Assembly: GCA_002269645.1 (NCBI GenBank)
Contig: NIVC01000420.1
Span: 248,001 to 312,000, forward strand
Source: Macrostomum lignano
Taxonomy: Eukaryota
Length of the DNA stretch: 64,000 nucleotides
Direction of reading: 5' to 3'
Positions within the stretch are counted from its first letter, which is position 1; the number at the start of each line of letters is the position of its first letter. Position numbers and translations under genes: made by a program. This document shows, one piece after another, positions 39,931 to 60,224 of the stretch. Under the pieces are notes generated by a model, which was not told the DNA's origin, did not search any database, and saw nothing but the letters and a program-made list of their open reading frames with translations.

Positions 39931-41204
39931 TCAGTCACTTCTGTTCGGTTTTGCGATTATTATTGATAGGCCAAAGATGCGCTCACTAGAAGAAAAGAAA
40001 GAGTGAACTAGAAACCTTTCTAGAGGATTTTAATGGCTCAAAATTTCAAAGAAATTTTCCCTTCAAATCAGAGCAAAGATCAAAAGAGCTGGACAGGACA
40101 TGATTTGAGACCCCGAACCCGAACTAACCCCCGTGGCACGTCAATGTAGCATGCACTTGGGAAAGTTATGCGGGAATGTCATGCACACAGCAATTGAGCC
40201 CCAGTTTTGTAGCGAGGCACATACGAAGTACAAAATTTACTAATTTGTATTCTTGATATTTAGACTTCTATCAGTTGTCAAATTTAGTAAATTGACTGGT
40301 GCCAGCTGGTATCTTGGTCTTCAGTTTAACATCCTGAATCTGAAGGTCCCAACCAATTCTGCCAATTCTTAAATCTATTATTGAGAAGCAATTCATACTC
40401 ACTAGATTGTCCAGGACAGGACGATCCTCTCTCATCCTCATCTCCATGGTTGATGATGCAGGCATGTATAAATATAGCTATTTTTCGGAGAGAATTGCAG
40501 ACAGAACAGGGAAACGAAAAAGCACAAACAAAGGCTTGCGAAATATGCGGAATACAAATAAGGAACACAGCAAAGCAGCAAAAATGTTATTGAGGACTGA
40601 AAAGCTTCAATCGGTTTTCAATTTGGGATTGTCTTTTGAAAAAAATATGAAAAAAATATTTTCAAGAGCGATCCTCGAGTCAGTTATTAATATTTTTGCA
40701 CGGCACAGCAGATAAAAAGCAAAATCCTGTTGTTGCTATCAGCGTCTCTTTTGTGTCATCCTTTTTCTCTACCTCGCCGAACTGTTGTCGCCATGTTCAT
40801 CTAAAATGATTGAGCAAGGAATTGCGAATAAGATTGATTGATTGATTAAAGTTAATTAATTAAACAGATACTGGGATCCTGCTGTCACCCTGAGCCAGAT
40901 TAAAACTAAAAGCAATATATAATCTGAGAAATTGCACTCAGCTATACGGAACCAACTAAATCTGGACTGCTTTATTGGAGGTTCGAATACAACCATGCTC
41001 TATTTTGAGTTAGCTAGCTTACCCGAAACTAAGTAATATTCTCATATGACGTCAGTTACTCCATTACCCTGATTAACTAAGCCCCTCCACTACAGTCGAT
41101 AAGCCCCATTTCGATATTGAATATGATTTAAAGGATTGGAAAAATTTAGACTCTTTATAGATAACTTAATGAACTGATAAAGCCATGAGGTGCTTCTATC
41201 CTAG

Positions 41205-41810: not shown

Positions 41811-42313
41811 TTTTATTGTCTTATATGTGCATCTGCCACTCCAACTCAAAGACTTATTGCGGAGGCTAACTACGCTCGTAACTGATTCACGCTGTGTACC
41901 CTCTCTGAGCTAGCTTAAAGCCTACCTGCTCTTAAATTTCGCCAGCCAATGACGTAAATCTTTGTCACTATTGGCTAGCTATACTATGGCTAATGCAAAG
42001 TTCGATGACTACTAACAGTAGCTTTGAAGCAGTTAGGGTATTGAAATGATTAATTATCAAGAGAGTTCAAATCGACGCAGAAGAGAAAATAGGAGTCTTA
42101 AACCCGAACTATTGGCTGTAAAATTAATCTTTTTAGAAAAATGATTGCATTGTTAGCGTATGCTAATGAGGATAAACTGGACTGCGACAGGCGAGGATTA
42201 GCACACCACAAGACTACATACATCATGCAAGCAAGCTCATACGGTACTAACTTCTACGAAATTAAATGAATGCTAATGGTTTGAAAACAAAATAGCATTC
42301 GAAAAAACCGCAC

Positions 42314-45300
42314 CAGCCTCCGCTGACTCTGCCGTGTGCGCCATCGTGCCTGCAGTCGAATTCGCAACGTCTAAACTATCTGTGGACGCTTCCATAGCCG
42401 ACTGTTCTCGAACAACACGGACGCCCTCGCTGGGCATGGAATAGGCCAGGGCCCAGCCACTGCCGGATGCTTCTTCGTTGCGCAATCCCTCGATGCTGTC
42501 AACACTAGCTACCATCATCTGGGCGGCGTCGGCTGAAGACAGGGAGTCGGCCTCGCTTGGTGCAAGCAGCGAGGATGTCATGCTGGCTCCCATAGCAGCC
42601 CCAGGCTGCTGCTGCTGTGGCGCTGCCAGCACAGACGGCTGACGCACGGAAGACAAGTCGTCGTCGTCGTCCTCCTCCGCACTTTCATTTTCTTCCGTCT
42701 GCTGTTTCTCCCCGACGGGTTCTCTTTCGCGTTTCAATTCTTCCTCTGGAGCGGCTTCGTGACCGCTCAAACTGTCCGCATCGATGCGCTCCTCTTGGGA
42801 CGAGCCGTGCACCAGAATCTCTTGTATGCGTTGGTAGCTATCGCCTGTCACGTCTGCCGCAGCTGCTGATGCGGTCGCAGAATTTGCAGCCTCATCTTCC
42901 GGAGACATCTCCCCGACTGTGGGCAGCTGACCAGCTTCCAGTGCCTCGGCAATCTTCGATGCTTCACTGAAGAGCTCCTCATCTACGGCCGACTTTTCAA
43001 GCTGCTCAAACTCATCTAACGAGGACGATTTTGAGTCCGCGGCAAGCCGCCCTTCGCTGTCCTTCTCACCTTCTTCCGCTTCCTCCAGAGGACTCTCGTC
43101 CAGAGGTGTTTGGCGCCAAAAATCACCTGGTGAGCCTGTGGTCGTCGCAGCTGCAGCCTCGCACTCGCGTTCGAGCCTTTCAAATTCCACCAGTGACGAG
43201 CTGACGGATCGGCCCCCGCCGGAGGCAGCCGCTTCACCACTGGACGAAGATTTTTTCAGTGAACCCGTGCTGCTGATCTGCTGAGCGATCTCCTGTTCTA
43301 ATCGCTCAAACTCAGACAGTGACGATGGTATAGAAGATGACGCTGAACGGCTGTCAACTGAGTGCGACTGCCCGCAGCTAGGGCTCCCACTGACGCCTGT
43401 CGCTGCGCGTGGAACCACCTGCTGCCGCTTGGCGAGCCGCACTGGGTCAGAGGATTGACCTGGCACAGTCGTTAATCCTGCAGTCGCTGGCGAACCTGCG
43501 GACGCAGCACTTGGCGAGGACACCAGCTCGTAGTCCTCCAACGAATCGCGAGATGCCGATAACTCCGACAGCAATTGATCCTGCGCTGTTGTTGCATCCG
43601 AGCTGCATGACTCAGCCATGAGCTCAGGAAATCTGTCCTGCTGTTGCTGGTGATGCCGCAGCACCACTGTTGACTGGCTTGATAGGCTCGACGCTTCAGA
43701 TATCTCAACAGACATTTCCTCTTCGATCTCGAAACCGATGATTTTCGGAGCAGTTCCAGTCGGACGAGGAATCTGCGAAGTCCGAACTGACTGTTGGACT
43801 GTTGACTTTTGAGAAGCCGCGGTAACTGTCACCGTTGATGCAGAAGGCTGATCTTGGTTCTGATCTTGTTGCTGCTCTGGTGAACTCTCTGGAGTCTCTT
43901 TCAGCTCAATGATCGGCGAAAGGACGCTCTCGTCAATAACCACCGGCTCCTGATCCGGCTTCTCTACTTCCGAATCTTCTTCTTCAACTTCTCCTCCTTC
44001 GAGCAGATCACCTCCGAGCTCCATGAGGTGACGTTCAGCGAGCATCTCAGCGGCCAGAGCTCTCTGCTCAAGCTCCGGTGTATCCAGTGGCATCGACTCT
44101 ACTTCGGGCTGTTCTGCTGATCCCGACAACTCGAGAGCATCGTATGCACTTGCCAGAGCTGACAGCACCAGCTGTGCTGCTACAGACTCTACTTCTGATT
44201 CGGCCACCTCAGCGCCGTCCTCACCAGTGGGCTCCAGTATTGTCGGCACAGTTATCTCTTCGAAGGATTCACTGGTGTCATTATCTGTTTTGTTTTCCTC
44301 TCGCGCGGGCAGTGACGGCAGCTGAACTGTCGTAGCTCTCAACGCTCCTATTGCCGGCCCGAGAGCATCTGGGGTATCAAGCGGCTCGGCTGTCTCGTCA
44401 ACATCGTCTTCGCCATCACCACCTTCGCCTGGGAATTCAGCCTCGTCGCACTCGGAGTTTTGAACGGTGTCCGGCCCGGCTAGGGTGGAGGCAGCCTCAC
44501 TTGCCAGCGACATCGAGATGTCTGTGGCGTCTTCGTCTCTTCCCGCTGGCTGCCGTGCCTGCTCCGTATCGCTGTCACACGTATCGGCGCCCGCCTCCGC
44601 AGCGCTAACCAGAATGAAGCCGCTATCGTCTTGGCAGGCAGCGCTACCGAAGTGTTCCGAGGTAGCGGAAGTCCCCATTCCCGCGCCTTCACCGCTGCCG
44701 GCGGCACCGCCTCCCCCGGTTACGCTGATTCCCGAGCTAGGCATTTCGCTAGACCTGGATGCATCCTGGCTGAACGAGGACGTATTGAGAGGTAATTCGC
44801 TCGCCGCCGCTGACTCCATCATTTCGGCTGCTTCAGCCTCCATTTCAAACTGATCCTCTTCCTCCTTGATTGGAGAGCGGTCGTCAGGACTAAAACTAGC
44901 CTTGTCATTCCCCTTGTCCTCTTCTGCGATCTTTGATGTTTTTTCGTCCTCCTCGTCAGCTTCCAGTGACTGCGAAGTAGTAGCAGAAGCGGTTGCCATC
45001 TGCACTTTCGCATCTGGTGGGAGGGAGCGGCGGATGACTGAGTCAAATGACTCTGGCGTTGGCGACGGAGGCGCAGAACCAGGAGATGCAGGCGATGCGG
45101 CGATGTTGGCTGCTGCAGCCGCAACAGCTGGGAGTTGCGGCGACGCTTGTGGCTGCATCGACTGCTGCGTCTCTGTCGGTGCAGCCTCCTCAGACTTAGC
45201 CAGTGGGAATGCCTCGATGCCATGGTAGACTCTAGTTTGCGGCTGAGAAACAAGCATAGACTCCTCCGATGCAGGCAGCTGGTCCTTGTTCCAAACAATC

Positions 45301-48300
45301 CAATCGGCTGTCTCGTCGTCTTTTCCAGCAATGTCGTCTCTCGTAGCATCGTCTGGTTTTGGAACAGTGCTGGGCGCTTTTAGCTCCTCTGGTCTAACTC
45401 CAGAGCTTACACTGCCAGCACCTACAGTTTCATTTTCCTTGCTAGGCAGGGTTTTCGGTAATGTATCTGCTTCCTTGTACACCAAGATTTTCTCCTCTTC
45501 TAGAACTTCTTCAAGCGCAGCCTCGGGTAGCTCAGCAGACTCCCCAAAAAAGTCCATATCCTTCGCACTGGCGTCAGGGCCCAGTGATTTACCCGATTGC
45601 TCTTCAAACGTTGGCATTTCAAACCTCTCAGGCTCCAAAGGCTGTTCGACTTCTTGAGGCTTGCAGCTCGGCTTCTCTGCCTCTTCAGGCTCCAAAGGCT
45701 GTTCGACTTCTTGAGGCTTGCAGCTCGGCTTCTCTGCCTCTTCAGGCTCCATGTGAGTCGGTTTTTCCACCTCTTCAGGGTCCTTGTAGGCCGGCTTCTC
45801 TGCCTCTTCAGGCGCCATGTGAGTCGGTTTTTCCACCTCTTCAGGGTCCTTGTAGGCCGGCTTCTCTGCCTCTTCAGGCGCCATGTGAGTCGGTTTTTCC
45901 ACCTCTTCAGGGTCCTTGTAGGCCGGCTTCTCTGCCTCTTCAGGCGCCATGTGAGTCGGTTTTTCCACCTCTTCAGGGTCCTTGTAGGCCGGCTTCTCTG
46001 CCTCTTCAGGCGCCATGTGAGTCGGTTTTTCCACCTCTTCAGGGTCCTTGTAGGTCGGCTTCTCTGCCTCTTCAGGCTCCTTTTGAGTTGGCTCCTCGAC
46101 CACCTCGAGTTCTTCATAGGCTGGCTTTTCAGTTTTTTCAAGTTCATTGTAAGTTAACTCATCGACCTCTTCAGGCTCTTCGTAGGTCAGCTTGTCGATC
46201 TCTTCAGGCTCCTTCAGAGTTGGCTTTTCCTCCTCAGGTTCATTTTTAGTCGGTTTCTCGACCTTCTCAGACTTTTCATGCTGATGTTCGACTACTGACT
46301 CAAAACTCTCTTTTTGAATAGAAACCGCTTCCTGATTGGTCAGGCAGTGCTTACTCTGAAGCGCGCGCATTTCCTGAGCTTCCTCCACTCGACTATTAGA
46401 TTCGCTGCTATCCCACGAACGAAAAGATACGCTGTGAACTGAACCAGCTACTTGTCGAAAGCTACTTTCCTGGTGAATTTCAGTTTTATTCAACGTGCTC
46501 GAACTCTGAACTGTGCTTTCCTCAAAATGAAGGGACTGTGAATGAGTCTCCGAAAAATATTGTTGCTGCTCTGAAACTCCAGCTGTTCTCGAAGTCACCT
46601 CGGTCAGCAATGAGGTCGAAGTGTCTCCGATAGCTGAGTCCTCAGGCACCCGGAGCTGCACAGCTAGGATTTCAAATTCATCCAAAACTTCTGACTTAGA
46701 TTTCAAAGCAGTCTCGAAATTCGAATTGATTTCTGAATGAGCTTTCTCGGTTGAATAACCAGCCGTGTCATGAATTGGCTCATCAAGAGGATTCTCTTCA
46801 GTGTGAACAAGCTCATCCCGAAACTTAGAAACTTCTTCTTCGGCACGAATTGATTCTTCTTGACTGTCAAGAACCTTCTCTTCAGTGTTGAGTGCCTTAT
46901 CGTGAATTGTCTCTTCAGCATGAGCTGGCTCATCGTGCACTTCTGTAACCTTCTTATCAGTGTGTGCCGGCTCTACATGCACTTCAGGAATCTTCTCTTC
47001 GGCATGAGCAGGTTCTGCATGCACTTCAGGAACCTTTTCTTTGGCATGAGCAGGTTCTTCATGCGAAACTTCAGGAACCTTTTCTTCGGCATGAGCTGGC
47101 TCTTCCTGCACTTCAGGAACCTTCTCTTTGGCATGAGCTGGCTCTTCCTGCACTTCACGAACCTTCTCTTCGGCATGAGCAGGCTCTTCATGCGAAACTT
47201 CAGTAACCTTCTCTTCGGCATGAGCAGGCTCTTCATGCGAAACTTCAGTAACCTTCTCTTCGGCATGAGCAGGCTCTTCATGCGAAACTTCAGTAACCTT
47301 CTCTTCGGCGTGAGCTGGCTCTTCATGCACTTCAGGAATCTTCTCTTCGGCATGAGCTGGCTCTTCATGCAACACTTCAGTAACCTTCTCTTCGGCGTAA
47401 GCTGGCTCTTCATGCACTTCAGGAATCTTCTCTTCGGCATGAGGTGGCTCTTTATGCACTTCAGGAGTTTTCTCTTCGGTATGAGGTGGCTCTTTATGCA
47501 CTTCAGGAGTTTTCTCTTCGGCATGAGCTGGCTCTTCATGCAAAACTTCAGTAACCTTCTCTTCGGCGTGAGCTGGCTCTTCATGCAAAACTTCAGTAAC
47601 CTTCTCTTCGGCGTGAGCTGCCTCTTCATGCAAAACTTCAGTAACCTCTTCGGCGTGAGCTGGCTTTTCATGCGAAACTTCAGTAACCTTCTCTTCGGCA
47701 TGAGCAGGCTCTTCATGCAACACTTCAGTAACCTTTTCTTCGGCGTGAGCTGCCTCTTCGTGCGAAACTTCCGTAACCTTCTCTTCGGCGTGAGCTGGCT
47801 CTTCATGCACTTCAGGAGTTTTCTCTTCGGTGTGAGCTGGCTCTTCATGCACTTCAGTAACCTTCTCTTCGGCGTGAGCTGGCTCTTCATGCACTTCAGG
47901 AGTTTTCTGTTCGGCGTGAGCTGGCTCTTCATGCACTTCAGGAGTTTTCTCTTCGGCATGAGGTGGCTCTTTATGCACTTCAGGAGTTTTCTCTTCGGCA
48001 TGAGCTGGCTCTTCATGCGAAACTTCAGTAACCTTCTCTTCGGCGTGAGCTGGCTCTTCATGCGAAACTTCAGTAACCTTCTCTTCGGCATGAGCTGGCT
48101 CTTCATGCGAAACTTCAGTAACCTTCTCTTCGGCGTGAGCTGGCTCTTCATGCGCTTCAGTAACCTTCTCTTCGGCATGAGCTGGCTCTTCATGCACTTC
48201 AGGAATCTTCTCTTCGGCATGAGGTGGCTCTTTATGCACTTCAGGAGTTTTCTCTTTGGCGTGAGCTGGCTCTTCATGCGAAACTTCAGTAACCTTCTCT

Positions 48301-51300
48301 TCGGTATGAGCTGGCTCTTCATGCACTTCAGTAACCTTCTCTTCGGCGTGAGCTGGCTCTTCATGCACTTCAGTAACCTTCTCTTCGGCGTGAGCTGGCT
48401 CTTCATGCGAAACTTCAGTAACCTTCTCTTCGGCGTGAGCTGGCTCTTCATGCGAAACTTCAGTAACCTTCTCTTCGGCGTGAGCTGCCTCTTCGTGCGA
48501 AACTTCAGTAACCTTCTCTTCGGCGTGAGCTGGCTCTTCATGCGAAACTTCAGTAACCTTCTCTTCGGCATGAGGTGGCTCTTTATGCACTTCAGGAGTT
48601 TTCTCTTCGGCATGAGCTGGCTCTTCATGCGAAACTTCAGTAACCTCTTCGGCGTGAGCTGGCTCTTCATGCGAAACTTCAGTAACCTTCTCTTCGGCAT
48701 GAGCAGGCTCTTCATGCAACACTTCAGTAACCTTCTCTTTGGCGTGAGCTGGCTCTTCATGCGAAACTTCAGTAACCTTCTCTTCGGCGTGAGCTGGCTC
48801 TTCATGCACTTCAGTAACCTTCTCTTCGGCATGAGCTGGCTCTTCATGCACTTCAGTAACCTTCTCTTCGGCGTGAGCTGGCTCTTCATGCACTTCAGGA
48901 ACCTTCTCTTCGGCATGAGCTGGCTCTTCATGCGAAACTTCAGTAACCTTCTCTTCGGCGTGAGCTGGCTCTTCATGCGCTTCAGTAACCTTCTCTTCGG
49001 CATGAGCTGGCTCTTCATGCACTTCAGGAATCTTCTCTTCGGCATGAGGTGGCTCTTTATGCACTTCAGGAGTTTTCTCTTTGGCGTGAGCTGGCTCTTC
49101 ATGCGAAACTTCAGTAACCTTCTCTTCGGCATGAGCTGGCTCTTCATGCACTTCAGTAACCTTCTCTTCGGCGTGAGCTGGCTCTTCATGCACTTCAGTA
49201 ACCTTCTCTTCGGCGTGAGCTGGCTCTTCATGCGAAACTTCAGTAACGTTCTCTTCGGCGTGAGCTGGCTCTTCATGCAAAACTTCAGTAACCTTCTCTT
49301 CGGCGTGAGCTGCCTCTTCGTGCGAAACTTCAGTAACCTTCTCTTCGGCGTGAGCTGGCTCTTCATGCGAAACTTCAGTAACCTTCTCTTCGGCATGAGG
49401 TGGCTCTTTATGCACTTCAGGAGTTTTCTCTTCGGCATGAGCTGGCTCTTCATGCGAAACTTCAGTAACCTCTTCGGCGTGAGCTGGCTCTTCATGCGAA
49501 ACTTCAGTAACCTTCTCTTCGGCATGAGCAGGCTCTTCATGCAACACTTCAGTAACCTTCTCTTTGGCGTGAGCTGGCTCTTCATGCGAAACTTCAGTAA
49601 CCTCTTCGGCGTGAGCTGGCTCTTCATGCGAAACTTCAGTAACCTTCTCTTCTGCATGAGCAGGCTCTTCATGCAAAACTTCAGTAACCTTCTCTTCGGC
49701 ATGAGCAGGCTCTTCATGCAACAGTTCAGTAACCTTCTCTTCGGCGTGAGCTGGCTCTTCATGCGAAACTTCAGTAACCTTCTCTTCGGCGTGAGCTGGC
49801 TCTTCATGCACTTCAGGAATCTTCTCTTCGGCATGAGCTGGCTCTTCATGCAACACTTCAGTAACCTTCTCCTCGGCGTAAGCTGGCTCTTCATGCACTT
49901 CAGGAATCTTCTCTTCGGCATGAGGTGGCTCTTTATGCACTTCAGGAGTTTTCTCTTCGGTATGAGGTGGCTCTTTATGCACTTCAGGAGTTTTCTCTTC
50001 GGCATGAGCTGGCTCTTCATGCGAAACTTCAGTAACCTTCTCTTCGGCGTGAGCTGGCTCTTCATGCAAAAATTCAGTAACCTTCTCTTCGGCGTGAGCT
50101 GCCTCTTCATGCAAAACTTCAGTAACCTCTTCGGCGTGAGCTGGCTTTTCATGCGAAACTTCAGTAACCTTCTCTTCGGCATGAGCAGGCTCTTCATGCA
50201 ACACTTCAGTAACCTTCTCTTCGGCGTGAGCTGGCTCTTCATGCACTTCAGGAATCTTCTCTTCGGCATGAGCTGGCTCTTCATGCACTTCAGGAATCTT
50301 CTCTTCGGCATGAGGTGGCTCTTTATGCACTTCAGGAGTTTTCTCTTCGGCATGAGCTGGCTTTTCATGCGAAACTTCAGTAACCTTCTCTTCGGCGTGA
50401 GCTGGCTCTTCATGCACTTCAGGAATCTTCTCTTCGGCATGAGGTGGCTCTTTATGCACTTCAGGAGTTTTCTCTTCGGTGTGAGCTGGCTCTTCATGCA
50501 AAACTTCAGTAACCTTCTCTTCGGCGTGAGCTGGCTCTTCATGCACTTCAGTAACCTTCTCTTCGGCATGAGCTGGCTCTTCATGCACTTCAGTAACCTT
50601 CTCTTCGGCGTGAGCTGGCTCTTCATGCACTTCAGGAACCTTCTCTTCGGCATGAGGTGGCTCTTTATGCACTTCAGGAGTTTTCTCTTCGGCATGAGCT
50701 GGCTCTTCATGCGAAACTTCAGTAACCTCTTCGGCGTGAGCTGGCTCTTCATGCGAAACTTCAGTAACCTTCTCTTCGGCATGAGCAGGCTCTTCATGCA
50801 ACACTTCAGTAACCTTCTCTTCAGCGTGAGCTGGCTCTTCGTTCAACACTTCAGTAACCTTCTCTTCGGCGTGAGCTGGCTCTTCATGCAACACTTCAGG
50901 AACCTTCTCTTCGGCGTGAGCTGGCTCTTCATGCGAAACTTCAGTAACCTTCTCTTCGGCATGAGGTGGCTCTTTATGCACTTCAGGAGTTTTCTCTTCG
51001 GCATGAGCTGGCTCTTCATGCGAAACTTCAGTAACCTCTTCGGCGTGAGCTGGCTCTTCATGCGAAACTTCAGTAACCTTCTCTTCGGCATGAGCAGGCT
51101 CTTCATGCAACACTTCAGTAACCTTCTCTTTGGCGTGAGCTGACTCTTCATGCGAAACTTCAGTAACCTCTTCGGCGTGAGCTGGCTCTTCATGCGAAAC
51201 TTCAGTAACCTTCTCTTCTGCATGAGCAGGCTCTTCATGCAAAACTTCAGTAACCTTCTCTTCGGCATGAGGTGGCTCTTTATGCACTTCAGGAGTTTTC

Positions 51301-53698
51301 TCTTCGGCATGAGCTGGCTCTTCATGCGAAACTTCAGTAACCTCTTCGGCGTGAGCTGGCTCTTCATGCGAAACTTCAGTAACCTTCTCTTCGGCATGAG
51401 CAGGCTCTTCATGCAACACTTCAGTAACCTTCTCTTTGGCGTGAGCTGACTCTTCATGCGAAACTTCAGTAACCTCTTCGGCGTGAGCTGGCTCTTCATG
51501 CGAAACTTCAGTAACCTTCTCTTCTGCATGAGCAGGCTCTTCATGCAAAACTTCAGTAACCTTCTTTTCAGCGTGAGCAGGCTCTTCATGCACTTCAGGA
51601 ATCTTTTCTTCGGCATGAGCTGGCTCTTCATGCACTTCAGTAACCTTCTCTTCGGCGTGAGCTGGCTCTTCATGCGAAACTTCAGTAACCTTCTCTTCGG
51701 CGTGAGCTGGCTCTTCATGCGAAACTTCAGTAACCTTCTCTTCGGCGTGAGCTGCCTCTTCGTGCGAAACTTCAGTAACCTTCTCTTCGGCGTGAGCTGG
51801 CTCTTCATGCGAAACTTCAGTAACCTTCTCTTCGGCATGAGGTGGCTCTTTATGCACTTCAGGAGTTTTCTGTTCGGTGTGAGCTGGCTCTTCATGCGAA
51901 ACTTCAGTAACCTTCTCTTCGGCGTGAGCTGGCTCTTCATGCAAAACTTCAGTAACCTTCTCTTCGGCGTGAGCTGGCTCTTCATGCACTTCAGTAACCT
52001 TCTCTTCGGCATGAGCTGGCTCTTCATGCGAAACTTCAGTAACCTTCTCTTCGGCGTGAGCTGGCTCTTTATGCACTTCAAGAGTTTTCTGTTCGGCATG
52101 AGCTGGCTCTTCATGCACTTCAGTAACCTTCTCTTCGGCGTGAGCTGGCTCTTCATGCACTTCAAGAGTTTTCTCTTCGGCATGAGCTGGCTCTTCATGC
52201 ACTTCAGTAACCTTCTCTTCGGCGTAAGCTGGCTCTTCATGCACTTCAGGAACCTTCTCTTCGGCGTGAGCTGGCTCTTCGTGCAACACTTCAGAAACCT
52301 TCTCTTCGGTGTGAGCTGGCTCTTCATGCACTTCAGGAGTTTTCTCTTCGGCATGAGCAGGCTCTTCATGCACTTCAGGAACCTTCTCTTTGGCGTGAGC
52401 TGGCTCTTCATGCAACACTTCAGAAACCTTCTCTTCGGCGTGAGCTGGCTCTTCGTGCACGCCAGGAACCAGTTTAGGAAGATCTGGCTCTACGTGCATT
52501 TCTAGAGTCTTCTCTTTAGCTGACTCCTCGTGAAGTTCAGGAGCCTTGTCAGCTTGTAGTGCTTCGTCCTGAAGCTTCTCATTATTTTCTTCTGCATAAT
52601 CTGGATGAGTTTGGCTAAGCTCTGTGCTTCTCTTTCTTAGCTGAACTGCAAGAACATTTATTTCCTCTTCCCTTTCGATGTGACCGTGCATTGGCTCAGA
52701 TACAGAATCACTTTGGACCGTCGCTTTCTCGTGTTGAATCCTCTCATCAAGAACCGTCTTCTGATCCAGCCGATCTTGTTCAGTCGGAACAGTCGGTTCG
52801 GATGCTTTTTCCTTTTCATGAGTAGTCTGCTCATCTTGAGCAGGAGTCTGCACCTCCTTCGTCTTAGCCTTCAGCTCTATCGACTCCTCCTCGGTGATTT
52901 GCGTCATGCGCTCAGCCAGAGGCGATGCTGCCACTGCACCTGCAGCAGCGCTGTTGCCACCAGCTCCCGGAAACTTCTTGTAGGCGTCAACGGGACTCTG
53001 CACCGGGCTGTCCAGCTTCTCCTCGATGCGAGAGTACGCGTACTCAGCGGAGACTAGTCGGGAAAATGCCGCGGCGCCAGCTTGTTGGGCACTCGTCAAA
53101 TCGTCTTTAGCCGGGCTGACCAGCTCTTCTGGTCGAATTCCGCCCTCATGGAACAGGCCGCGCCCGATCGGCAGCTCCTCGGGCCTGAAGAAGGCGGGCT
53201 TTCCAGCAGATGGCGTTTCCTCATCGTCTTCCTCCTCGCCCTCCGTGGCCGAAGCCGACGTGTAGGATGCCGATGAGGCGCTTTCCAAAAAGACGTCCTC
53301 CGAAGCGTCTGCAACCTCTGCATCGGCTGCCTGTTGGAAACTGATGATTGCGGACGGCGTCTCCTCTACTGGCGTCGGCGCCTCGGAGCCGGTATCAGCG
53401 CCAGATATGGAGCGCGTTAGCTCGGAGATCGATTTCTCCTCCACCTGGGGCGTCGCATCAGGCGCGTTTAGCGCGTCATCGATGCTGACATGCCGCATCT
53501 CGCTGCGAAGGCTCTCTTCGAACTCCATGCTGCGCAGCATAAGCGAGTTCAACGAATGCCGCCGCGTAGCATCGCCTGGTGATTCTGCAGGCGCCGGCAC
53601 GACGTCGGCTGCCCTGTCGGAAGCTTCCTCGATCGCGGACGCTACGGGAAGTTGCGTCGGTGGTTGAGCCTGTCGTCTCTGGGCGTCTCGTTGTGTCT
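42314..53698 (-). CDS. Giant exon of ankyrin (~11.4 kb, ~3795 codons), acidic and predicted disordered
   Basis: Acceptor AATCTACAG|AG at 53698 (phase 1, matching the upstream exon); uninterrupted frame of more than 3770 codons; donor GCTG|GTGCGG at 42314 (an alternative GA|GTCAGC at 42328 cannot be excluded). Confidence 0.9.
45600..46090 (-). repeat. Coding repeat: 22-aa KPTHMAPEEAEKPAYKDPEEVE x~5, plus two 19-aa variants
   Basis: 66-bp units visible in the DNA and in the giant-exon translation. Confidence 0.9.
46900..52480 (-). repeat. Coding repeat: 15/16-aa EEPAHAEEKVTEV(S/L)H x~120
   Basis: 45/48-bp units; all length variants are multiples of 3. Confidence 0.97.
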
Positions 53699-53934
53699 CT
53701 GTAGATTTCGACGGCGGAGAGTAGGGCAGGGTCGGGTTTAGTGGGAAGCGGAGGGGTTAGTGTGTTAAGAGCGGCACAGCAAAAACTTGTTCGTGTTAGC
53801 ATGCAAGTTTCAACCCATAAAAACTATACTATAAGTAGCGCCCACCCCTCTCCATTCTGTGCATGCAGATCAGGCAAGAGGTTCGGCAACTGGAGAACAC
53901 ACGGCAAGACCAGAGCTGCAAGCTTTGCGGGTAC

Positions 53935-54279
53935 CGCTGTCAGTTGCCCTCGGCCTGGAGAGCTCATCTGGAGTAGAGGAAGACGTTACAGTCGCCGTGC
54001 CCGATGCCGACGCCGATGCCGCCTCCATGAGGGCCTCCCGCCAGGCCTCATCGGATGAAGACGGATCGTCGGCACCCAACAGGGTGTCCTCGCTGGCCCC
54101 GGTTGTGATGTCGGTGAAGTCGGCTGAAACAGCCGACGAGGCCGTGGTGGATCGGTCAGCGGAGCTATCCGTCCGCTCGCGTCGTCGGCGGAGTCGCGGA
54201 CGTTGCGAGTCCGGCGTGGCCCAGGTGCCGGAGTCCTCGCGGGCCTCCGAGGCAGCGGACCTCTGGGACCGACTGTCTG
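53935..54279 (-). CDS. Ankyrin exon immediately upstream of the giant exon
   Basis: Acceptor CTCAAG|CA or CAAGCAG|AC (phase 1), open frame DSRSQRSAASEARED...RPRATDS, donor AGCG|GTACCC (phase 1). Confidence 0.7.
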
Positions 54280-54660
54280 CTTGAGCAGCAGTGATTTGCT
54301 AGCAAGCTTCAGTCTCAGCCTAAGTGTGTAACTAGCGACTTACCGTACTGAACCATTAGAAAATTAATCTTGCCAAAATAGGACATATCAGTTAATGCAC
54401 AAATAAGATATCTGGAATGCATACTCAATTAGCTAAGATGCATGGAGCTTCTGAATGGTTCAAGATTATTTGGTAGGTAATAAATGTACTAAAAATGGAT
54501 GGATAATTTTCCTGACCAAGACCTTCCAAAGTACGGACTGCTCAAGGATCATCAAGGATGGAAGCGAACGCAGATTTTGCATGACGCCGCTGTCCCAAAC
54601 CACGCTGATCAAGTTTGATTTTCTATACAAAAAAATTTAGCAGGGTCTGCGTGTCCTTAC

Positions 54661-55875
54661 TGTCTTCCGCATCTGCAGCATCATCTGGCTCTTCTGCGGC
54701 AGCTGGAATAAAATCGATAAAAATCAGTGAAAATATGTTTCTCACGGATGTGTCAATGCACAATATCGAAGCAGAAAGTGGAAATCTCTCACCTTCATCA
54801 GCAACGCTGGAGGATCTGCGCTGTTCTGCGTGTGCAATCCCAACAATTTTCGGTACCTCGACAACTGGAATGGAACACAGCATTCGATTTACGAGGCATG
54901 CTTTCGATGTTCTCTATATTCTCTCTTTGTTTAACTGAACTAGGGACTAATGAACCAATCGCGCGTTCTTTCACCTTCCTCCGGTGTTCCCGCCTCAGGG
55001 GCCATGGACTGGTCCTGATGAACGTCCAACTTGTGTAGAGTCTCTTCAACTGAAATGTTTCAATATTCCATTGACAAGTAAATACGAATGTACTAATGGT
55101 AAAAAACCATGACGAACAGGGAATAAAGTACATTAGCGTTCAGTCAACGGTTTTAAGGGATATTAAATTTTCTTCAGAAACAGCCACCCGTAATTTATTT
55201 CTACTTATTCAAGCGTAAAATTCAATTTAATTTCATTTATCAAGTCCATTTGAAGCGTGACTATAATGATGCATTGCAAAAAATGATGAAGCTATACTGG
55301 CTTGTTGAAAATTACCATCAGCTGTGGCCTTTGGCAGTGCTTGCGCCTGCGTAACCGTCTTTGGCACCTCGACCACTGCAAATTTTTATTTGACAGTTTG
55401 CGCTTAGTTAGAAAAAATTGGTTGGATCGTAATCTTTCGACTATAAATACTAGTTTTGTTGTATTAATATCAATTACCTTCTTCCGGTGTTACAGCTTCC
55501 GGCGCCATGGACTGGTCCTGAATTGCATCCCGCTTCTCCAATTTCTCTTCAATAGGAACTGAAAAATTATATCGTTATTAACAGTATAATACTACTAACC
55601 CAATATAAGTAGTCTAACATGTAAAATTGCTAAAAAAATTCACGAACCCCCAGCAGCTGTCTCTGGAGGCGTGTGCACCTGGGCTTGCACTTGGCTGATA
55701 GACTTTGGTACATCAACAACTTCTTCTGGCGTTCCAGCCTCCGGCGCCATCGACTGATCGGGACGAGCGTCCAGCCTGGCCAGCAGCTCCTCCACCGCGT
55801 TGAGTCCCTCCTTTGCTCGCTTCTCCGGCGAGCCGGGTGCTTTGCTCGGCTCCACTACAGCCTCATCTACAGACT
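54661..55875 (-). CDS. Ankyrin cassette of six short symmetric exons: 55875-55648, 55558-55478, 55375-55316, 55049-54975, 54864-54793, 54702-54661
   Basis: Each has an AG acceptor and GT donor, phase 1-1; lengths 228, 81, 60, 75, 72 and 42 nt. Repeated peptides DQSMAPEA(G/V)TPEE and VV(E/D)VPK. Confidence 0.78.
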
Positions 55876-56131
55876 CTGGAGTTGAGGTGTTGGGGATGAT
55901 GCGTCAAGTCCGCTAGTTATCACTGGGAACTATTTTGATTGTCATATACAGCCATCCTAGTTGACGTAATCTCTATAAAGCAAAACGGTACAGCAATCCG
56001 ACGTCGATGACAGATATGTACTCTTACACTATCTGTCAATGCAATGTAGAAGCACATATTTTTCATCGTCCCCAGGTTACTGCACGAGAAACTAAAAACG
56101 ATTCGCATCTACCATCCCCCAAAGCACTAAC

Positions 56132-58631
56132 CTTTGTCTTCAAACTCTGAGGTCGTAGCCAACGGCTTCGGCTCAGGTGTCTGTTCCTCCAACGTGCGAA
56201 CCAACTCCAGATAGGCCTCTGTCTTGGCGCGCCGTGCGGCTGCCTCCTCGTCGGCGGTGTACGATCGAGCTACGCCGTGCGTCGGATCCACGGCCGCAAC
56301 CAGTTCGGGCTCATCTGCGGACTCCGCTGGCGCAGCAACATCCGATGCTGCCCGCGGCGCCGGCCTTGCAGCCTTTGAAATCGGAGGTCCGCTGTAGTCC
56401 GGCAGGGCCAATTCCAGAGTGCAGATTGCCGCAGTCGTCGCGGAGGTCGTCTGCGGCTCGGCCAGGAAGGCGACGCGTCCAGCGGCCGGCTGGTCGGCGT
56501 CGCGGGGTCGAGCGCCGCAGGTGAGGCGGTTTTCTCGGAAAGCACGGACGGTGAAGAACGGCGGCTGCTGTAGCTGGTGCTGCTGCTGGTGATCGAACAG
56601 ACCGCGAGGCTCGGCCGCCACATGGAAGGCGGTCAGATTGTCTAAACCTTCTATCCACAACGGCCGACCGTCGAGGATTTCAACTTCGCGCGATTCCGCC
56701 TTCCGCTCGAAGCCCTGCGCCGTCTCCAGAGTTTTGTCCGCCTGTTGATTGTTGCGAGTCGCGGCCGTGCATCGATTTTGGTTTGCACTTGAAAGCTAAG
56801 CACATTTGGCTAGGTTAGATACTAGATAGAAAGGATATCCTTCAACGATTACATGTAGAATTATGTCAGGGCCGCTGTACACCCCTTGGCTCCGTAGCTA
56901 AATCTCCTTCACAAATTCTTTTTCAAGAAAACGAAACTACTAATTTTCACCTTAGTATCAATTGCTAAATCATGTTTGAATCCCTTAGGTTTTATCCCTT
57001 CTAATAATCTCTCCCCTTACCCGGTCATCCGTGATGCAGAGGCAGCGAAGTCGAGCCTCATCCGGGTGAGTCCTCTTGGCGTAGACCACAAAGCGGCCCA
57101 TGTAGGGCACGGCAGCGGCCTCCCTGTACAGCTTGCCGGCCATCTCGGCGGCTTCGGCCGGGTTCTGACAGTCGACTAGCCAAAATCTGGCGCTCACCGT
57201 TGTAGTGAAAGACACGCTGTCCTTGACGTGGGACAGCGCTGTAGAACCGGTGATGTCTTCCCAGGTGGCCGGCTGAGCGCCACCAGTGATGCTGCATAGC
57301 AGGCGAAGCGTCTGCGACGCGCCCAACCCTGACGCCGACGCGGCCGACGGCAGCGGCAGGGTGAGAGTGATCGGCTTGTGAAATTTACGCCGACGCGGCT
57401 CGATGGTCACCACCGGGGAGGCGGCGATTCGACGCTGGCCAGCGCCGCCGAACAGGCGGGCAGCCGCCTCCGACGGGATCGGGAATACCTGTAAACGGTT
57501 TTGAATATCCGTTGTACTTTTAGGGACTCTTCTTTGTACTATTAAGGACTCTCTGTTGTACTTTTAAGGACTCTGTTGTACTTTAAGGGACTCTCTGTTG
57601 TACTTTTAAGGACTTTCTTTTGTACTTTAGAGACTCCCTGTTGTACTATTAGGGACTCTCTATTGTACTTTTAATGACCTCACTCTTGTACTTTTAGGGA
57701 CTCTCTGTTGTACTTTTAGTGACTCTCTAAAGCACACACGACAAGCCAGAAGCACTCATTTAAAGACTAAGTATAGGTCAAGTCAGTGCAAGCGCACTCT
57801 GGAAAAGGATTAAAAACGCAAGTTGACAGACTCCATGGTCCAAAAAAGCTTGACAGAAAAGTGGCACCAATTCAGACGCCAGTTCAAACCTGAACTCCAA
57901 CTCGAATCTTCTTGGTCAAGGCGCCGTCCGGGAACACAGACTGGACGCGTCCGTTGGCCAGGCTGGCGCCAATAACGCCGCCCTCCGGACCGATCAGGGC
58001 CGCCTCCTGTCGGAGCCGCGTCACCAAGGCGAAGTACTGCGGCAGGCTGGCAGTCAGGATGCGTACGATGCGCCTCTGGCGCAGCTCTTCGTTGCTCTCC
58101 AACGGGCTGCCAAAGAAGCCGCCAATGACGTCTAGCACAGCCTGCTCGGAGGCCTCAAGAGCGTGCTCTTTCCAGGTTTCACCTGTGTCCGATCTGACAG
58201 GTACGGGATGTGATGTCTGCACTGTTATGTCTATGGCCTAACTTTGACAGAGCGAGAGCGAGCACAGTACCCGCAAAGCAGCCGACTATTTAAAATTCAT
58301 CTTTCTTACTTGAATTTCGTTGGAGATTCGCTCTCACCTGTAGACCACAATCTCCCTCTCAGAGTTCCTCAGCGCGGCCATGTGCGGCACCTCGAGCAGC
58401 ACGGGACTGGCGAAGCTCCGGCAGCTGCAGCCGAACTCCAGGATCCGGCAGGCGAGGCCTTCGCCGTCGTTCAGCTGCGGCGGCCGGCTCACCCGGCCGG
58501 GGCGGAGCAGGCGGCACGTGACTCGGGTTGGCCCGGTGGCCGCGTTCGGCGGCACCACGATGCGCAGGCCCGGACAGCGGGCGCCGGTCATGGCGCCGCC
58601 TCGGGCGTCAACCAGGAATGAGACCAGGAAC
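56132..58631 (-). CDS. ank: Ankyrin spectrin-binding supramodule ZU5-ZU5-UPA: exons 58631-58338, 58193-57890, 57488-57021, 56741-56132
   Basis: GFLVSFLVDARGG, PVLLEVPHMAALR..EREIVVYRSDTGETWKEH, LPQYFALVTRLRQE..IGPEGG, VFPDGALTKKIRVGVQ, SPVVTIEPRRRKFHKPITLTLP, LRLLCSITGG..PATWEDITGST, FTTTVSARFWLVDC, PYMGRFVV, ARLRCLCITDD..DKTLE; all splice phases are consistent. Confidence 0.97.
57515..57725. repeat. ~22-bp intronic repeat TTGTACTTTTAGGGACTCTCTG
   Basis: About 9 copies in an ankyrin intron. Confidence 0.85.
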
Positions 58632-60224
58632 CTGGAGGCGTTGGGGACGCCATGGTACATTGGAATTGGATTTGACACAATTGGACAATAGGACACAAGC
58701 CTCGAGGTTTATATTCATCAACGTTCATTGTCATTCAGTTTGGACGTGTTTTCAATAAACATTAGTTAGACAAAGCTTTTGGCACTGCTGACACCTGACC
58801 CTGAGCACGCACACTTCTCATGTACATTGAGACATGTTGATTTATATACCGGTAGTAAAATTGCTCAGATGAGTCCGAAAAATGTTGTCATAAAGGAAAT
58901 GAGTGATGGGAGAGGATGGCCTGTGCCTATGGCCCACTGACGAAGGCGAACAACCAGAAATGTTTCGTGGTTTTACCGCAAATATTGATCCATAACAAAT
59001 GCGAAAACTACGAGCACTAAGGACCAGCAAGTGACCACTTGGCATTAGGAAATGGGATGACGAGGCAAGAGAGTGATGAAGGCAGTGCTCATCAGCTTCG
59101 GCTGCTGTGAAGTGGCAGTTAAGAGAACTCATTGTCAACCCAACCCCACAAAAAGTTTCCTGGCCGCCGGCTATGCACGCTCGTAGGCTACGCCTGAAGA
59201 TTTTAACTTTCTGCCTGTCAATCAGCAATATTGTGAGATAAATATTTGGTAGCAATGTCCATTTAAAGTACAAATAATTAGTGATATATACTATGTCAGA
59301 TCGTAGTTTGAAAAAATATCTTACAATTTCCCAGTCGCAGAGGCTTCGCCATCGGTCGGTGGCTGGCACTTCACTGCAGTGACTGTCATCCCGAGCAGTT
59401 TCCTAGAAATACAAGGCCACCCTCCCGGCCACGGTTTCTCGGGTTCTGTCAAGTAATACTTGTGATTCTAGAGCGTAGTTACTGGGTCCCGTTCGATTCG
59501 ATCAAAGATCTGATTGACATTGTCCCAAAAAGGTCTCTGGTTGAAATACGTCTTGTGCAGTCCGTTCCTCTCCTCCCCAACTCAATCGCTACTCTTCCCC
59601 AATCTATGGGAGAGCGGCATTGGCTGAGAAGCGAGGAATTCAGGCGAGGGGGGGGGAGTTATGAGCGCATCCCAGCTTTTCCCGTCCCTGCCTACTGTAA
59701 CTCTAAAGAAGTATTTTGGTCTGCAGCGGACGTGGATCGGCTCGTGCGTACACTCGAGATTCAGGACACGCGGCCTTAAAGCAGAGGACAGTCCCGTATT
59801 CTCCTGCACTTGGCGCAGAAATCCAGGCCGGAGTATGAGGGAGGAGACGGGTTGTTGCCATGCGCTGTTCAACCTTCCCTTGTTTCGCCTCTGTATATGC
59901 TATTGCGTGCGACACATTACATTGACTCGTCTAGACTCATCTCTCAATTGAGGCCTTCTGTTTGTTCTCCAGCCTCCTCTCTTCCTCATCATGGCATTAT
60001 ACGTACGATAAAGTTTCTAAAATTAGAATACTATATATTCCTATATACGTCTACGGGTACTAGCAAGTGCTCAAGTTTGATTGACACGTTAACTGCTTGG
60101 TTTGTACTTTAAAGTTGTGTCTGGCCGCCTCTTAGTCAGTAAGAATTGAGTGTAGTTGAAACATAGAAAAATTTAACATGGAGGCAACTTCATTTCCTGG
60201 AAAATAACGGAAACAGGAGGGGGA

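Follow-up and report, generated by a model that had tools for sequence, protein, structure and literature searches.

A giant open frame beside Macrostomum lignano ankyrin exons is probably a long, optionally included exon with a paralog-specific repeat spacer

Introduction

What is encoded by an 11.4 kb open frame that lies next to ZU5-ZU5-UPA exons in the flatworm Macrostomum lignano, and what role might the histidine- and glutamate-rich array inside it have? Long exons in ankyrin genes are known from vertebrates (AnkG 480, AnkB 440), Ciona (Ank), Drosophila (Ank2-L/XL), C. elegans (UNC-44), Branchiostoma and others, with a reported mean size of 8103 ± 4850 bp (Jegla et al. 2016, PMC5135030). 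The arrays listed in that study, whose sampling left out flatworms, comprise 5 to >160 copies of units of 12–76 aa, including >160 × 16 aa in Branchiostoma and 15 × 12 aa in human AnkB, and long exons of protostomes are reported to lie downstream of the death domain (PMC5135030).

We analysed a 64,000-nucleotide stretch of contig NIVC01000420.1, referred to as the window, for its open frames, array anatomy, domain context, splice phases and homology to an annotated giant-ankyrin paralog. We regard the interval as, quite probably, a long and optionally included exon of a Macrostomum giant ankyrin, carrying a repeat spacer specific to this paralog.

Results

The minus strand of the window contains a stop-free frame at 42276–53756, which at 3,827 codons matches the approximately 3,800 claimed in an earlier note on this DNA, in which the strand was left unstated; the runner-up in the window has 581 codons. 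The non-repetitive flanks of the array (412 + 1,527 codons) have no stops in this frame, where any one of the other five has 9–114, so its openness is more than a by-product of the repeat. As proposed, the exon spans 53698..42314 (minus strand), which is 11,385 nt or 3 × 3,795; both of its splice junctions fall after the first position of a codon, as the note had stated. It has 3,795 codons, its acceptor (ctacag| before 53698) is phase 1, and it shows homology to two M. lignano protein models and to the locus of one of them (below). Glu and Ser make up 31.6% of the encoded residues, and Ser, Glu, Thr, Asp and Lys together with Pro 55.2%. GC3 is 0.54–0.56 in the exon, against 0.53 in the UPA exon and 0.74–0.89 in the other two core ZU5/UPA exons measured; we counted this shortfall relative to two of the three core exons against our reading.

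The giant frame begins 2.4 kb downstream of the ZU5-ZU5-UPA exons, to which ankyrins of many phyla align (58.7–56.1 kb). On the minus strand, the exon-bearing open frame at 58337..58708 carries the first ZU5 (Pfam ZU5, E=4.5e-23; tblastn with ankyrins aligns 58645–57902), and that at 57887..58237, crossed by the tblastn alignments of ten ankyrins, carries its end and the start of the second. The second ZU5 and the start of UPA fall within 56988..57563 (UPA_2, E=4.6e-12, with a weak ZU5 match; tblastn 57515–57018), followed by the UPA exon with an acidic linker tail at 56132..56795 (UPA_2, E=3.8e-19). The donor after 56132 (AAG|GTTAGT) is phase 1 and fits the phase-1 acceptor at 53698, in keeping with the placement of the exon downstream of ZU5-ZU5-UPA on the same strand. 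Between the two lie linker mini-exons (54793..55903, minus strand), including a fused linker copy in the open frame 55643–55903, candidate phase 1-1 cassettes at 55546–55478 (69 nt) and 54864–54793 (72 nt), and three diverged copies of a 77-nt linker core. The ankyrin-repeat exons would lie beyond the window, and it is the paralog that supplies the link to them. No death domain, which is canonical in ankyrins, was detectable in the window or at the paralog locus.

This paralog is PAA50710.1 (BOX15_Mlig013172g1), annotated as a hypothetical protein of M. lignano and encoded at NIVC01003580.1. Its ANK repeats are followed by ZU5-ZU5-UPA, by phase-1 mini-exons and by a long exon whose N- and C-terminal islands are conserved, and its exons are all phase 1-1 from UPA onward; the linker mini-exons of the window are homologous to its locus's exons 22190–22324 and 23234–23395. 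It is an old paralog, with 65% identity over the whole ZU5-UPA stretch and 44–60% in the long-exon islands. At the corresponding place, flanked by conserved blocks, it carries a 45-nt repeat array, EEPSQQHLRESPVPT × 14.7 (15-aa unit), where the window gene has 128 units, so that the repeat, held by the earlier note to be lineage-specific, is indeed paralog-specific. The loci also differ in that the block matching the start of the window exon (TRRDAQ...) sits on the small separate exon 23234–23395 of the paralog locus, followed by a 36-nt exon and a ~10.5 kb intron (24120–34680) before the long exon. That locus also has another array, 4.2 kb of 60/75-nt units, in a second long open frame that one annotated model uses in place of the homologous long exon. 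Strand, phase and an annotated paralog of the same architecture thus uphold the identification as a giant-ankyrin long exon, and a homologous exon with a different repeat suggests that the spacer is paralog-specific. A second M. lignano model (UniRef A0A1I8JMR8) matches the window at 97–99% identity in collinear blocks and covers the C-terminal 1 kb of the exon; by an exhaustive HMMER search, the window belongs to M. lignano or a very close relative.

Outside the array, the exon contains several conserved islands. Its non-repetitive N-terminal block (52461..53696, minus strand; 412 aa, pI 4.5) includes RRHSLN...VEEKSIS and LFHEGGIRPEEL, both kept in the paralog; tblastn gives 54–60% identity to 34749–35552 of the paralog locus, the N-terminal islands are 49–60% identical to the paralog long exon, and the last 570 aa are 48% identical to the paralog long exon. 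A second, short array at 45624..46101 (minus strand) consists of a 66-nt (22-aa) unit, PEEAEKPAYKDPEEVEKPTHMA, × 5.5 and a 57-nt unit × 2.3. A motif scan found a candidate EB-protein binding site of the SxIP type (RTSQIPRP; 43767..43778, minus strand) in a basic, acid-free context, retained in the paralog as ARTSQIPRP. The conserved C-terminal module (42993..43313, minus strand) repeats S(S/T)SLxEFExLExE three times before VDEELFSEASKIAEALEAGQLP, with invariant columns in the alignment; PAA50710.1 shares the triple module, and phmmer against the whole library gave E=2.5e-8 and 2e-4. AlphaFold2 (AF2) predicted helices on the SSLxEFExLE motifs (pLDDT 70–88) and disorder in the remainder of the chain. 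The triple module was also observed in giant ORFs of two metagenome contigs.

Tandem Repeats Finder reports the His/Glu array as one, at 46910–52459 with a period of 42 (also 87), 127.7 copies and 87% matches. Read in register from 52457 to 46896 (minus strand), it comprises 128 units of HEEPAHAEEKVTEV(S/L). Of these, 62 have 15 aa; the other 66 have 14 aa, being short of either the final Ser/Leu or Lys. Every unit is therefore 42 or 45 nt and all indels keep the frame. The earlier description of a ~5.6 kb array with in-frame indels thus holds (5.56 kb, with length changes all of 3 nt), while its figures of 15–16 aa and ~120 copies are corrected to 14–15 aa and 128. Within the consensus H-E-E-P-A-H-A-E-E-K-V-T-E-V-(S/L), each of the two His columns is His in 125 of the 128 units, Pro is kept in 120 and Glu, at four of its five positions, in 123–127; at the fifth (unit column 2), a subfamily of 16 units has Lys. 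Among the 1,854 residues are 251 His (13.5%) and 32.5% Glu, giving a computed net charge of about −434 at pH 7. Pfam has no family for this repeat or for that of the paralog, and AF2 gave no confident fold for ten units (mean pLDDT 57, pTM 0.26).

Our preferred reading of the array as a spacer competes with a plausible, though on balance doubtful, alternative: a coding minisatellite, grown by unequal crossing-over, that has no sequence-specific role and is tolerated because it keeps the frame of a disordered tail, its bulk alone, or nothing, being what matters. Non-coding tandem arrays abound in the window (among them a 17-bp unit × 539 and a 48-bp unit × 23), so expansion may be largely mutational; duplications of 300–720 bp at 97–99% identity within the array are recent, GC3 in the array is low (0.37), and in the paralog 14.7 units of another sequence suffice. 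Drosophila, too, is described as needing just a fraction of its Ank2-XL array, as far as the summary in PMC5135030 goes. Against this, all 128 units vary in length by 3 nt only, the His, Pro and four Glu columns are kept as described above, and the frequent codon variants (CAC/CAT, GTG/GTT, AAG/AAA, CCA/CCT) are synonymous. Counting against our own reading, the repeat shows no more than a modest trace of selection: synonymous and non-synonymous differences stand at ~13:31 by variant types and 179:184 by cells, which are not independent events.

How the exon ends bears on whether it is a cassette. The earlier note called it skippable in frame, which is indirectly supported: paralog exons are phase 1-1, a paralog model bypasses the homologous long exon, and a phase-1 acceptor (cattttag|) lies at 40800. 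The donor at 42314 (CTG|GTGCGG, minus strand) is the weak part of that claim, matching the consensus at 3 of 6 positions. If it is unused, translation would run 13 codons further to a TAG at 42273..42275 (minus strand), and the giant exon would be a terminal coding exon, an alternative 3′ end instead of a cassette. We consider this possible but somewhat unlikely. Besides the poor donor, it is favoured by an AATAAA 458 nt past the stop, by tblastx, which finds no block downstream of the exon conserved with the paralog locus, by the lack of a death domain or other recognizable coding exon downstream, and by the likeness to protostome long exons, which are sited on the gene's 3′ side. Conservation in both paralogs, however, ends at ...A-G, with a phase-1 GCTG|GT just ahead of the early stop; the equivalent point in the paralog reads GCTG|GTCAG. 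The paralog model that bypasses the long exon splices a phase-1 donor (GAAG|GTCAG) to a 17-nt terminal exon. The acceptor at 40800 opens a candidate terminal mini-exon (40769..40800, minus strand) analogous to it, encoding (D)EHGDNSSAR and then TAG, and EHGDNSSAR is the C-terminus of A0A1I8JMR8. We retain the cassette reading, in which the exon may be included or skipped.

The two His per unit in a poly-Glu background could also, as the earlier note suggested, make the spacer pH- or Zn-responsive: its charge or its compaction might vary with pH, or it might bind Zn2+ or other divalent ions, acting as an ion-sensitive spring or a high-capacity buffer. Repeats that are acidic and rich in His, with the sarcoplasmic histidine-rich Ca-binding protein as an example, are low-affinity, high-capacity binders of divalent cations, and the near-invariance of both His columns, with a computed net charge that halves to −219 at pH 5.5, would suit such a role. 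However, the cytosol seldom approaches pH 5.5, the His spacing (i/i+5 and i+9/10) does not correspond to a known Zn motif (HExxH, for example), and the AF2 prediction shows no structure pre-organizing a site. Nor do such exons share a richness in His, given that the paralog unit has one His and the 22-aa repeat likewise one per unit, and we think this role improbable.

Very improbable, finally, is that misassembly produced the length of the array or the entire frame, or that the frame is a separate gene nested beside the ankyrin: near-identical long tandem arrays are difficult to assemble, and the first in-frame ATG, ~85 codons into the proposed exon (~105 into the open frame), would permit an independent start, but the window has no Ns, the units are non-identical (~40 distinct protein variants) and diverge towards the 3′ edge (4.75 versus 1.7–3.2 mismatches per unit), the internal duplicates are 97–99% and not 100% identical, the independent A0A1I8JMR8 model spans the C-terminal 1 kb, and the annotated paralog protein joins the homologous frame to UPA.

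Discussion

We propose that the gene runs, on the minus strand, from ankyrin-repeat exons beyond the window through the ZU5-ZU5-UPA exons and a few small phase-1 cassettes to the 11.4 kb exon. If transcribed and included, as we infer, this exon would add ~3,800 acidic, mostly disordered residues in which conserved islands alternate with paralog-specific tandem repeats. If 480-kDa ankyrin-G and Drosophila Ank2-XL are apt analogues, the ANK and ZU5-UPA core would tether the protein to spectrin and to proteins of the membrane, and the long exon would form a highly charged, extended tail reaching into the axoplasm, presumably in neurons. The 1,854-residue array may then set length and charge as a spacer, an entropic polyelectrolyte bristle, while the islands may dock partners, for example EB proteins on microtubules. 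The array would have grown by unequal recombination of 42/45-nt units, constrained to stay in frame and to keep H, E and P.

The exon resembles bilaterian giant-ankyrin exons in being a multi-kilobase single frame after ZU5-ZU5-UPA in an ankyrin locus, in a size (11,385 bp) inside the reported range, in its acidic S/E/T/D/K/P bias and in its array of short lineage-specific units, an optional feature of such exons. Long exons with lineage-specific repeats being known from other phyla, the flatworm exon is a new example and not a new kind. The unit itself is new and unusually rich in His, Ala and Val. In contrast to the position reported for protostomes, the exon follows UPA and linker exons, in a gene that, like its paralog, has no detectable death domain.

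The closest parallel for the array is Drosophila Ank2-XL, whose repeat region of 93 × 76 aa (Stephan et al. 2015) is, in the summary given by PMC5135030, proposed as a molecular spacer between the membrane skeleton and microtubules. Both are very long tandem arrays in a giant-ankyrin exon. They share no sequence similarity, however, the unit here is five times shorter, the fly exons sit after the death domain, and function was tested in flies, whereas the flatworm array is a putative spacer. In the tail of 480-kDa ankyrin-G, about ten SxIP motifs bind EB1/EB3 (Freal et al. 2016; PMC6839619). The flatworm exon has one clear, candidate SxIP, also in a basic, Ser/Pro-rich, acid-free context and kept in both paralogs, but its surrounding sequence is not homologous.

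Entropic-spring or polyelectrolyte segments occur in other proteins, among them titin (PEVK and poly-E) and the neurofilament-M/H side arms. The resemblance is one of analogy only: the array differs in family and cell context, has no homology to these segments and no phospho-KSP, and has an unusual His content, but it too is built of long runs of proline-punctuated, E/K/V/A-rich units that are predicted to be unfolded, many of which contain PEV(H)K.

A long open frame with an in-frame repeat array

Scanning the 64 kb window for open frames, we found 3827 stop-free codons on the minus strand (53756-42276), the second-longest frame having 581. As random sequence carries about one stop per 21 codons, a frame of this length would not be attributable to chance. 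Its openness is also no side effect of the repeat it contains, given that the non-repetitive parts (412 + 1527 codons) have no stops, compared with 9-114 in each of the other five frames.

Tandem Repeats Finder identified a single array within this frame (46910-52459; period 42 nt, also 87; 127.7 copies; 87% matches). Cut in protein register, the array comprises 128 units running from 52457 to 46896, 62 of them 15 aa and 66 of them 14 aa long, the shorter ones being without the final S/L or without Lys. Both the frame and the array described in the earlier note are therefore real, although its estimate of about 120 units of 15-16 aa has to be corrected to 128 units of 14-15 aa. Its observation that every indel in the array keeps frame holds; all units measure either 42 or 45 nt, so that changes in array length are never frame-breaking. 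The consensus unit is HEEPAHAEEKVTEV(S/L), with His at both His positions in 125 of the 128 units, and the array as a whole contains 251 His (13.5%) and 32.5% Glu. A second, small array of 5.5 copies of a 22-aa unit is found at 45624-46101 on the same strand.

Across the exon, Glu (24.0%) and Ser (7.6%) together make up 31.6% of residues, and S, E, T, D, K and P 55.2%, a bias that comes mostly from Glu; the array also raises the proportions of Ala, Val and His. At third codon positions, GC stands at 0.54-0.56 over the exon's unique parts and at 0.37 within the array (42315-53696, minus strand), compared with 0.74-0.89 in the ZU5 exons and 0.53 in the UPA exon (56133-58645, minus strand), indicating that codon usage in the long exon is unlike that of most of the ankyrin core.

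The frame is splice-compatible with an ankyrin core

Using Pfam, we identified ZU5 and UPA domains in four open frames lying upstream on the same strand, from 58708 to 56130 (ZU5, E=4.5e-23; UPA_2, E=3.8e-19 and 4.6e-12). These form the tandem ZU5-ZU5-UPA supramodule of canonical ankyrins (the ANK1-3 / Ank2 / UNC-44 family), and the DAR motif of the first ZU5 is present as FLVSFLVDARGG. A protein search with the ZU5-UPA region returned 326 ankyrin matches with E<=1e-10, the top ones being 56-62% identical, and by tBLASTn ankyrins from many phyla align to the same region. The closest database ankyrins over ZU5-UPA are those of flatworms and a leech (54-62% identity). No ANK-repeat exon was found in 59-64 kb of the window, which places the 5' part of the ankyrin gene beyond it; the 24 N-terminal ankyrin repeats expected of a canonical ankyrin would lie there, and the M. 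lignano paralog described below does have ankyrin repeats.

The long uninterrupted frame shares the strand of this core and can be spliced to it. The UPA exon ends after 56132 in a donor that matches the consensus well (AAG|GTTAGT, phase 1), and the acceptor before 53698 (ctacag|, also phase 1) is preceded by a pyrimidine-rich stretch. Between the two lie candidate phase 1-1 cassette exons at 55546-55478 and 54864-54793 on the minus strand. The same linker contains three diverged copies (70-75% identity) of a 77-nt mini-exon core encoding ..DQSMAPEA(G/V)TPEE, at 54973-55049, 55476-55552 and 55718-55794 (minus strand), each with a (V)VxVPK.. segment after it, and the candidate cassettes are built on this core. 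G|GT donors accompany copies 2 and 3, whereas copy 1 has been fused into a single open frame (55643-55903); the arrangement resembles a set of duplicated phase-1 cassette exons in the linker between UPA and the long exon.

A homologous long exon in an M. lignano paralog

Searching 1.84 billion representative sequences exhaustively by phmmer with non-repetitive sequence of the exon, we found five proteins. In contrast, a word-indexed protein search gave no match for either end of the exon (C-terminal 1542 aa; N-terminal 412 aa). As this search missed proteins of 44-97% identity present in the same collection, its 'no homolog' result is unreliable for low-complexity acidic queries, which appear to swamp its list of 8000 candidates. 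Among the five, the M. lignano gene model A0A1I8JMR8 is patchy, with 97-99% identity to the window within collinear blocks; on this one model, the window derives from M. lignano itself, from a different haplotype or homeolog, or from a species very close to it. Another protein, P0122, clusters with PAA50710.1, an annotated M. lignano protein of 2938 aa that contains ankyrin repeats, two ZU5 domains and UPA, followed by sequence homologous to the window exon. Identity between PAA50710.1 and the window exon is 49-60% in N-terminal islands (RRHSLN..., VEEKSIS, LFHEGGIRPEEL) and 48% across the final 570 residues. The ZU5-UPA regions of the two genes are 65% identical, which makes them old paralogs.

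We mapped the PAA50710.1 model to its locus on contig NIVC01003580.1, where the UPA exon is followed by exons of 135, 162 and 36 nt and then by the long exon from 34681, with one base carried into each and phase 1-1 throughout. At the level of the deposited gene model, this is direct evidence for a homologous long exon within an ankyrin gene. It supports the claim of the earlier note that the frame is a giant-ankyrin exon downstream of ZU5-ZU5-UPA, as the annotated paralog carries the homologous exon joined to UPA.

In the paralog, the same interval between islands is occupied by an array of other sequence (45 nt x 14.7, unit EEPSQQHLRESPVPT). The proposal that the repeat is lineage-specific thus stands and can be narrowed, as comparison of the two sequences shows that the repeat is not only lineage-specific but also paralog-specific. 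A second long open frame at the paralog locus (26625-33131) contains 4.2 kb of 60/75-nt units (EVTETSETDIQVCPGVTTEL..) and lies within an intron of the PAA50710.1 model. Another annotated model uses this frame and skips the long exon homologous to that of the window, which suggests that this locus has alternative or mutually exclusive long exons. The two paralogs constitute a natural experiment, with common islands and different spacers (128 units of 14/15 aa in one; 15 units of 15 aa plus a 20/25-aa array in the other). Together with the phase-1 cassettes, this allows the effects of spacer length and chemistry to be examined apart from the docking motifs. Transgenesis and RNAi are practicable in M. 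lignano.

Comparison with known giant ankyrins

A survey by Jegla et al. (2016) detected long exons in the ankyrin genes of all bilaterian groups sampled, namely tunicates, cephalochordates, echinoderms, molluscs, annelids, arthropods, nematodes and vertebrates, with a mean size of 8103 +/- 4850 bp, and argued for a single bilaterian origin (PMC5135030). A subset of these exons contains arrays in which a unit of 12-76 aa is repeated 5 to >160 times, with repeat homology between close relatives only (PMC5135030). Their most conserved property is a composition bias, with Ser+Glu at ~25% and S, E, T, D, K and P at >55% (PMC5135030), and the window exon, at 31.6% and 55.2%, shares it. [quoted passage not shown] Flatworms are not mentioned in that survey (PMC5135030), and a literature search found no paper on Macrostomum ankyrins. 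The window exon extends giant ankyrins to the Platyhelminthes, a phylum missing from the single-origin survey.

Absence of a detectable death domain

The death domain that follows UPA in canonical ankyrins was not found at the window locus. None was detected in the window by tBLASTn with ten death-domain-bearing ankyrins, nor at 53690-56400 by Pfam in all three frames, and a custom UPA plus death-domain HMM run against every open frame of >=20 aa in the window recovered the UPA exons only. The same custom profile found none at the paralog locus, and Pfam found none in PAA50710.1. Among other flatworm ankyrins, a monogenean protein has a Pfam-detectable death domain directly after UPA, while a Fasciola protein has no Pfam death domain and a C-terminal tail that is death-domain-like by eye. 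The simplest reading of these searches, which cover the window, the paralog locus and PAA50710.1, is that the death domain was lost in these Macrostomum genes.

The long exon directly follows UPA and the linker exons, as it does in chordates, and no death domain was found downstream within 42 kb. On the opposite (plus) strand are two GPCR genes of the rhodopsin family, at 1381-2907 (7tm_1, E=9e-33) and ~17744-18603 (7tm_1, E=9e-18), suggesting that the ankyrin gene ends inside the window. Upstream of the second, a (TAGCAG)n microsatellite of 197 copies (16456-17630) sits in an open frame at 15981-17723.

The 3' end of the long exon and in-frame skipping

Taken alone, the window sequence could be read as showing that the long exon is the terminal exon, as the donor at 42314 (CTG|GTGCGG) is a poor consensus match and an in-frame TAG lies 13 codons past it. 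However, three observations favour a real phase-1 donor at 42314. First, conservation with the paralog stops at the same ...A-G, where the paralog has GCTG|GTCAG in phase 1, two codons ahead of its stop. Second, the other gene annotated at the paralog locus, with a product of 636 aa, could be rebuilt exactly as 31203-33096 + 42742-42758 of that contig; this model uses a different repeat-filled frame, a phase-1 donor (GAAG|GTCAG) at 33096 and a 17-nt terminal exon (DGASN-stop). Third, a phase-1 acceptor in the window at 40800 (cattttag|) leads to (D)EHGDNSSAR-stop, and the M. lignano model A0A1I8JMR8 ends in EHGDNSSAR.

The 636-aa model skips the exon homologous to that of the window. With the whole 3' half of the gene built of phase-1 cassettes, in-frame skipping of the long exon, proposed in the earlier note, is plausible on the basis of deposited gene models. 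The phase-1 cassettes and the paralog model speak for that proposal, and the poor match of the 42314 donor speaks against it.

The 40800 candidate surfaced only in a relaxed acceptor scan. A search of the window for a downstream partner exon, using phase-1 acceptors with >=25 open codons, gave no convincing match; tBLASTx against the 8.8 kb downstream of the paralog exon gave none, nor did a search of the window for the paralog terminal-exon sequence with up to 3 mismatches. We also considered as a possible ankyrin exon a 154-codon open frame at 41448-41909 (minus strand; ATG at ~41808, directly after AATAAA), which encodes an acidic, Ser-rich peptide (MSETMEDEAAAAASADESQQ...); it is without a Pfam family, paralog-locus conservation or a good phase-matched acceptor. 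Parts of this frame, in two frames, are included in A0A1I8JMR8, and a 35-bp x 7.2 tandem repeat follows it at 41195-41446.

Evolution of the array

Exact 60-mers recur within the array at offsets including 825, 306, 1566 and 2481 nt, all multiples of 3, and there are duplicated segments, 300-720 nt long, whose copies share 97-99% identity. Unit divergence rises toward the 3' edge of the array (4.75 versus 1.7-3.2 mismatches). This pattern of duplication and divergence is what unequal recombination produces. It also argues against a naive assembly duplication, the array length being that of the assembly.

Common variants among the units are synonymous (CAC/CAT 66:59, GTG/GTT 66:57, AAG/AAA 95:21, CCA/CCT 101:18), while non-synonymous variants define a sub-family, HKEPPHAEEK(T/I)PEV. 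By variant types the ratio of synonymous to non-synonymous is ~13:31, suggesting no more than modest purifying selection on the array sequence. Non-coding tandem arrays abound in the window, so a mutational propensity surely plays a part as well. The 9.2 kb minisatellite at 28966-38215 consists of ~539 copies of a 17-bp unit, GTGTCAGGAGAGTATGG (88% matches; GC skew ~+0.7), and lies ~2.5 kb past the candidate last ankyrin exon.

An SxIP motif and a conserved C-terminal module

The exon encodes an SxIP motif, VRTSQIPRPTGTAPK (RTSQIPRP; 43778-43767, minus strand), with four K/R and no D/E within +/-12 residues. Lying in this basic, Ser/Pro-rich and acid-free context, the motif fits the pattern [S/T]-x-[I/L]-P, is kept in the paralog and is a candidate EB-binding +TIP site. 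In 480-kDa ankyrin-G, SxIP motifs bind EB proteins and recruit microtubules (PMC6839619). Further towards the C-terminus (42369-43313, minus strand) lie three copies of S(S/T)SLxEFExLExE, then VDEELFSEASKIAEALEAGQLP; in our alignment neither paralog departs from them, nor do two ENA metagenome proteins, P0123 and P0125. Also part of this module are VDEEL..EA.K.A..LE.G.LP, Y..I..I and S.DSLE motifs.

By phmmer over the whole library, the triple-motif module ends both P0123 (E=2.5e-8) and P0125 (E=2e-4), and in each case a giant Glu-rich open frame immediately precedes the protein on a contig that is eukaryote-like. The module maps to 9595-11997 of one contig (ERZ25333528 ctg14999; GC 32%), which has a giant Glu-rich frame of at least 9 kb, and to 9428-11407 of the other (ERZ28675667 ctg1541; GC 38%), which has a 10,855-aa call with a 309-nt (103-aa) unit in at least 25 copies. 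The two are compositionally very different eukaryotic contigs.

AlphaFold2 modelled the C-terminal 393 residues, from an input alignment without the translated paralog-locus row, at a mean pLDDT of 48.7, with short helices on the conserved motifs (pLDDT 70-88). The core of the LIR/AIM motif, which interacts with Atg8/GABARAP, [W/F/Y]-x-x-[L/I/V] after acidic or phosphorylatable residues, is bound as an extended strand (PMC7615515). This pattern occurs three times in the module (S-S-L-x-E-F-E-x-L), yet the AlphaFold2 helices described above, which are amphipathic, lie on these segments. SSLxEFExLE had no sequence match in the PDB, and such strings were absent from the supplements of Jegla et al. 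(2016) and from the literature searched.

Could the C-terminal ~350 residues, comprising the SxIP, the three helical motifs and the VDEEL.. and S.DSLE repeats, be an ancient, overlooked docking module of giant ankyrins? On the sequence comparisons, we regard this as possible but rather unlikely. Should the two metagenome contigs prove to be ankyrin loci of other phyla, there would be real homology between long exons at the sequence level, in conflict with the published conclusion that none can be detected. There would then also be a shared partner-binding core (for EB proteins, and for Atg8/GABARAP or another helix-binding partner), and the repeat arrays, the His/Glu one included, would be interchangeable spacers. 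Current ankyrin biology is unchanged unless the conserved module proves widespread. The apparent absence of the death domain, together with the conserved SxIP and triple-helix module, bears on the ancestral role of the giant tail.

Properties and possible function of the tail

The exon product is acidic throughout (computed pI 4.2-4.7), and the array alone carries ~-434 charges at pH 7. AlphaFold2 gave no confident fold for ten array units (mean pLDDT 57, pTM 0.26). From the anatomy and conservation observed, we infer a function in which the tail would be membrane-anchored, the array would act as an entropic or polyelectrolyte spacer that determines the tail's reach and charge, as proposed for Drosophila Ank2-XL, and the islands may dock microtubule-associated or other partners.

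The His residues of the array are clearly maintained, and simple charge arithmetic indicates that its net charge halves from pH 7 to 5.5. That the array acts as a pH or Zn sensor, an idea raised in the earlier note, nevertheless seems to us improbable on this basis. An HExxH-type zinc site is ruled out by the His spacing (i/i+5, then i+9/10), which corresponds to no known Zn site. Both the paralog repeat and the 22-aa repeat have one His per unit.
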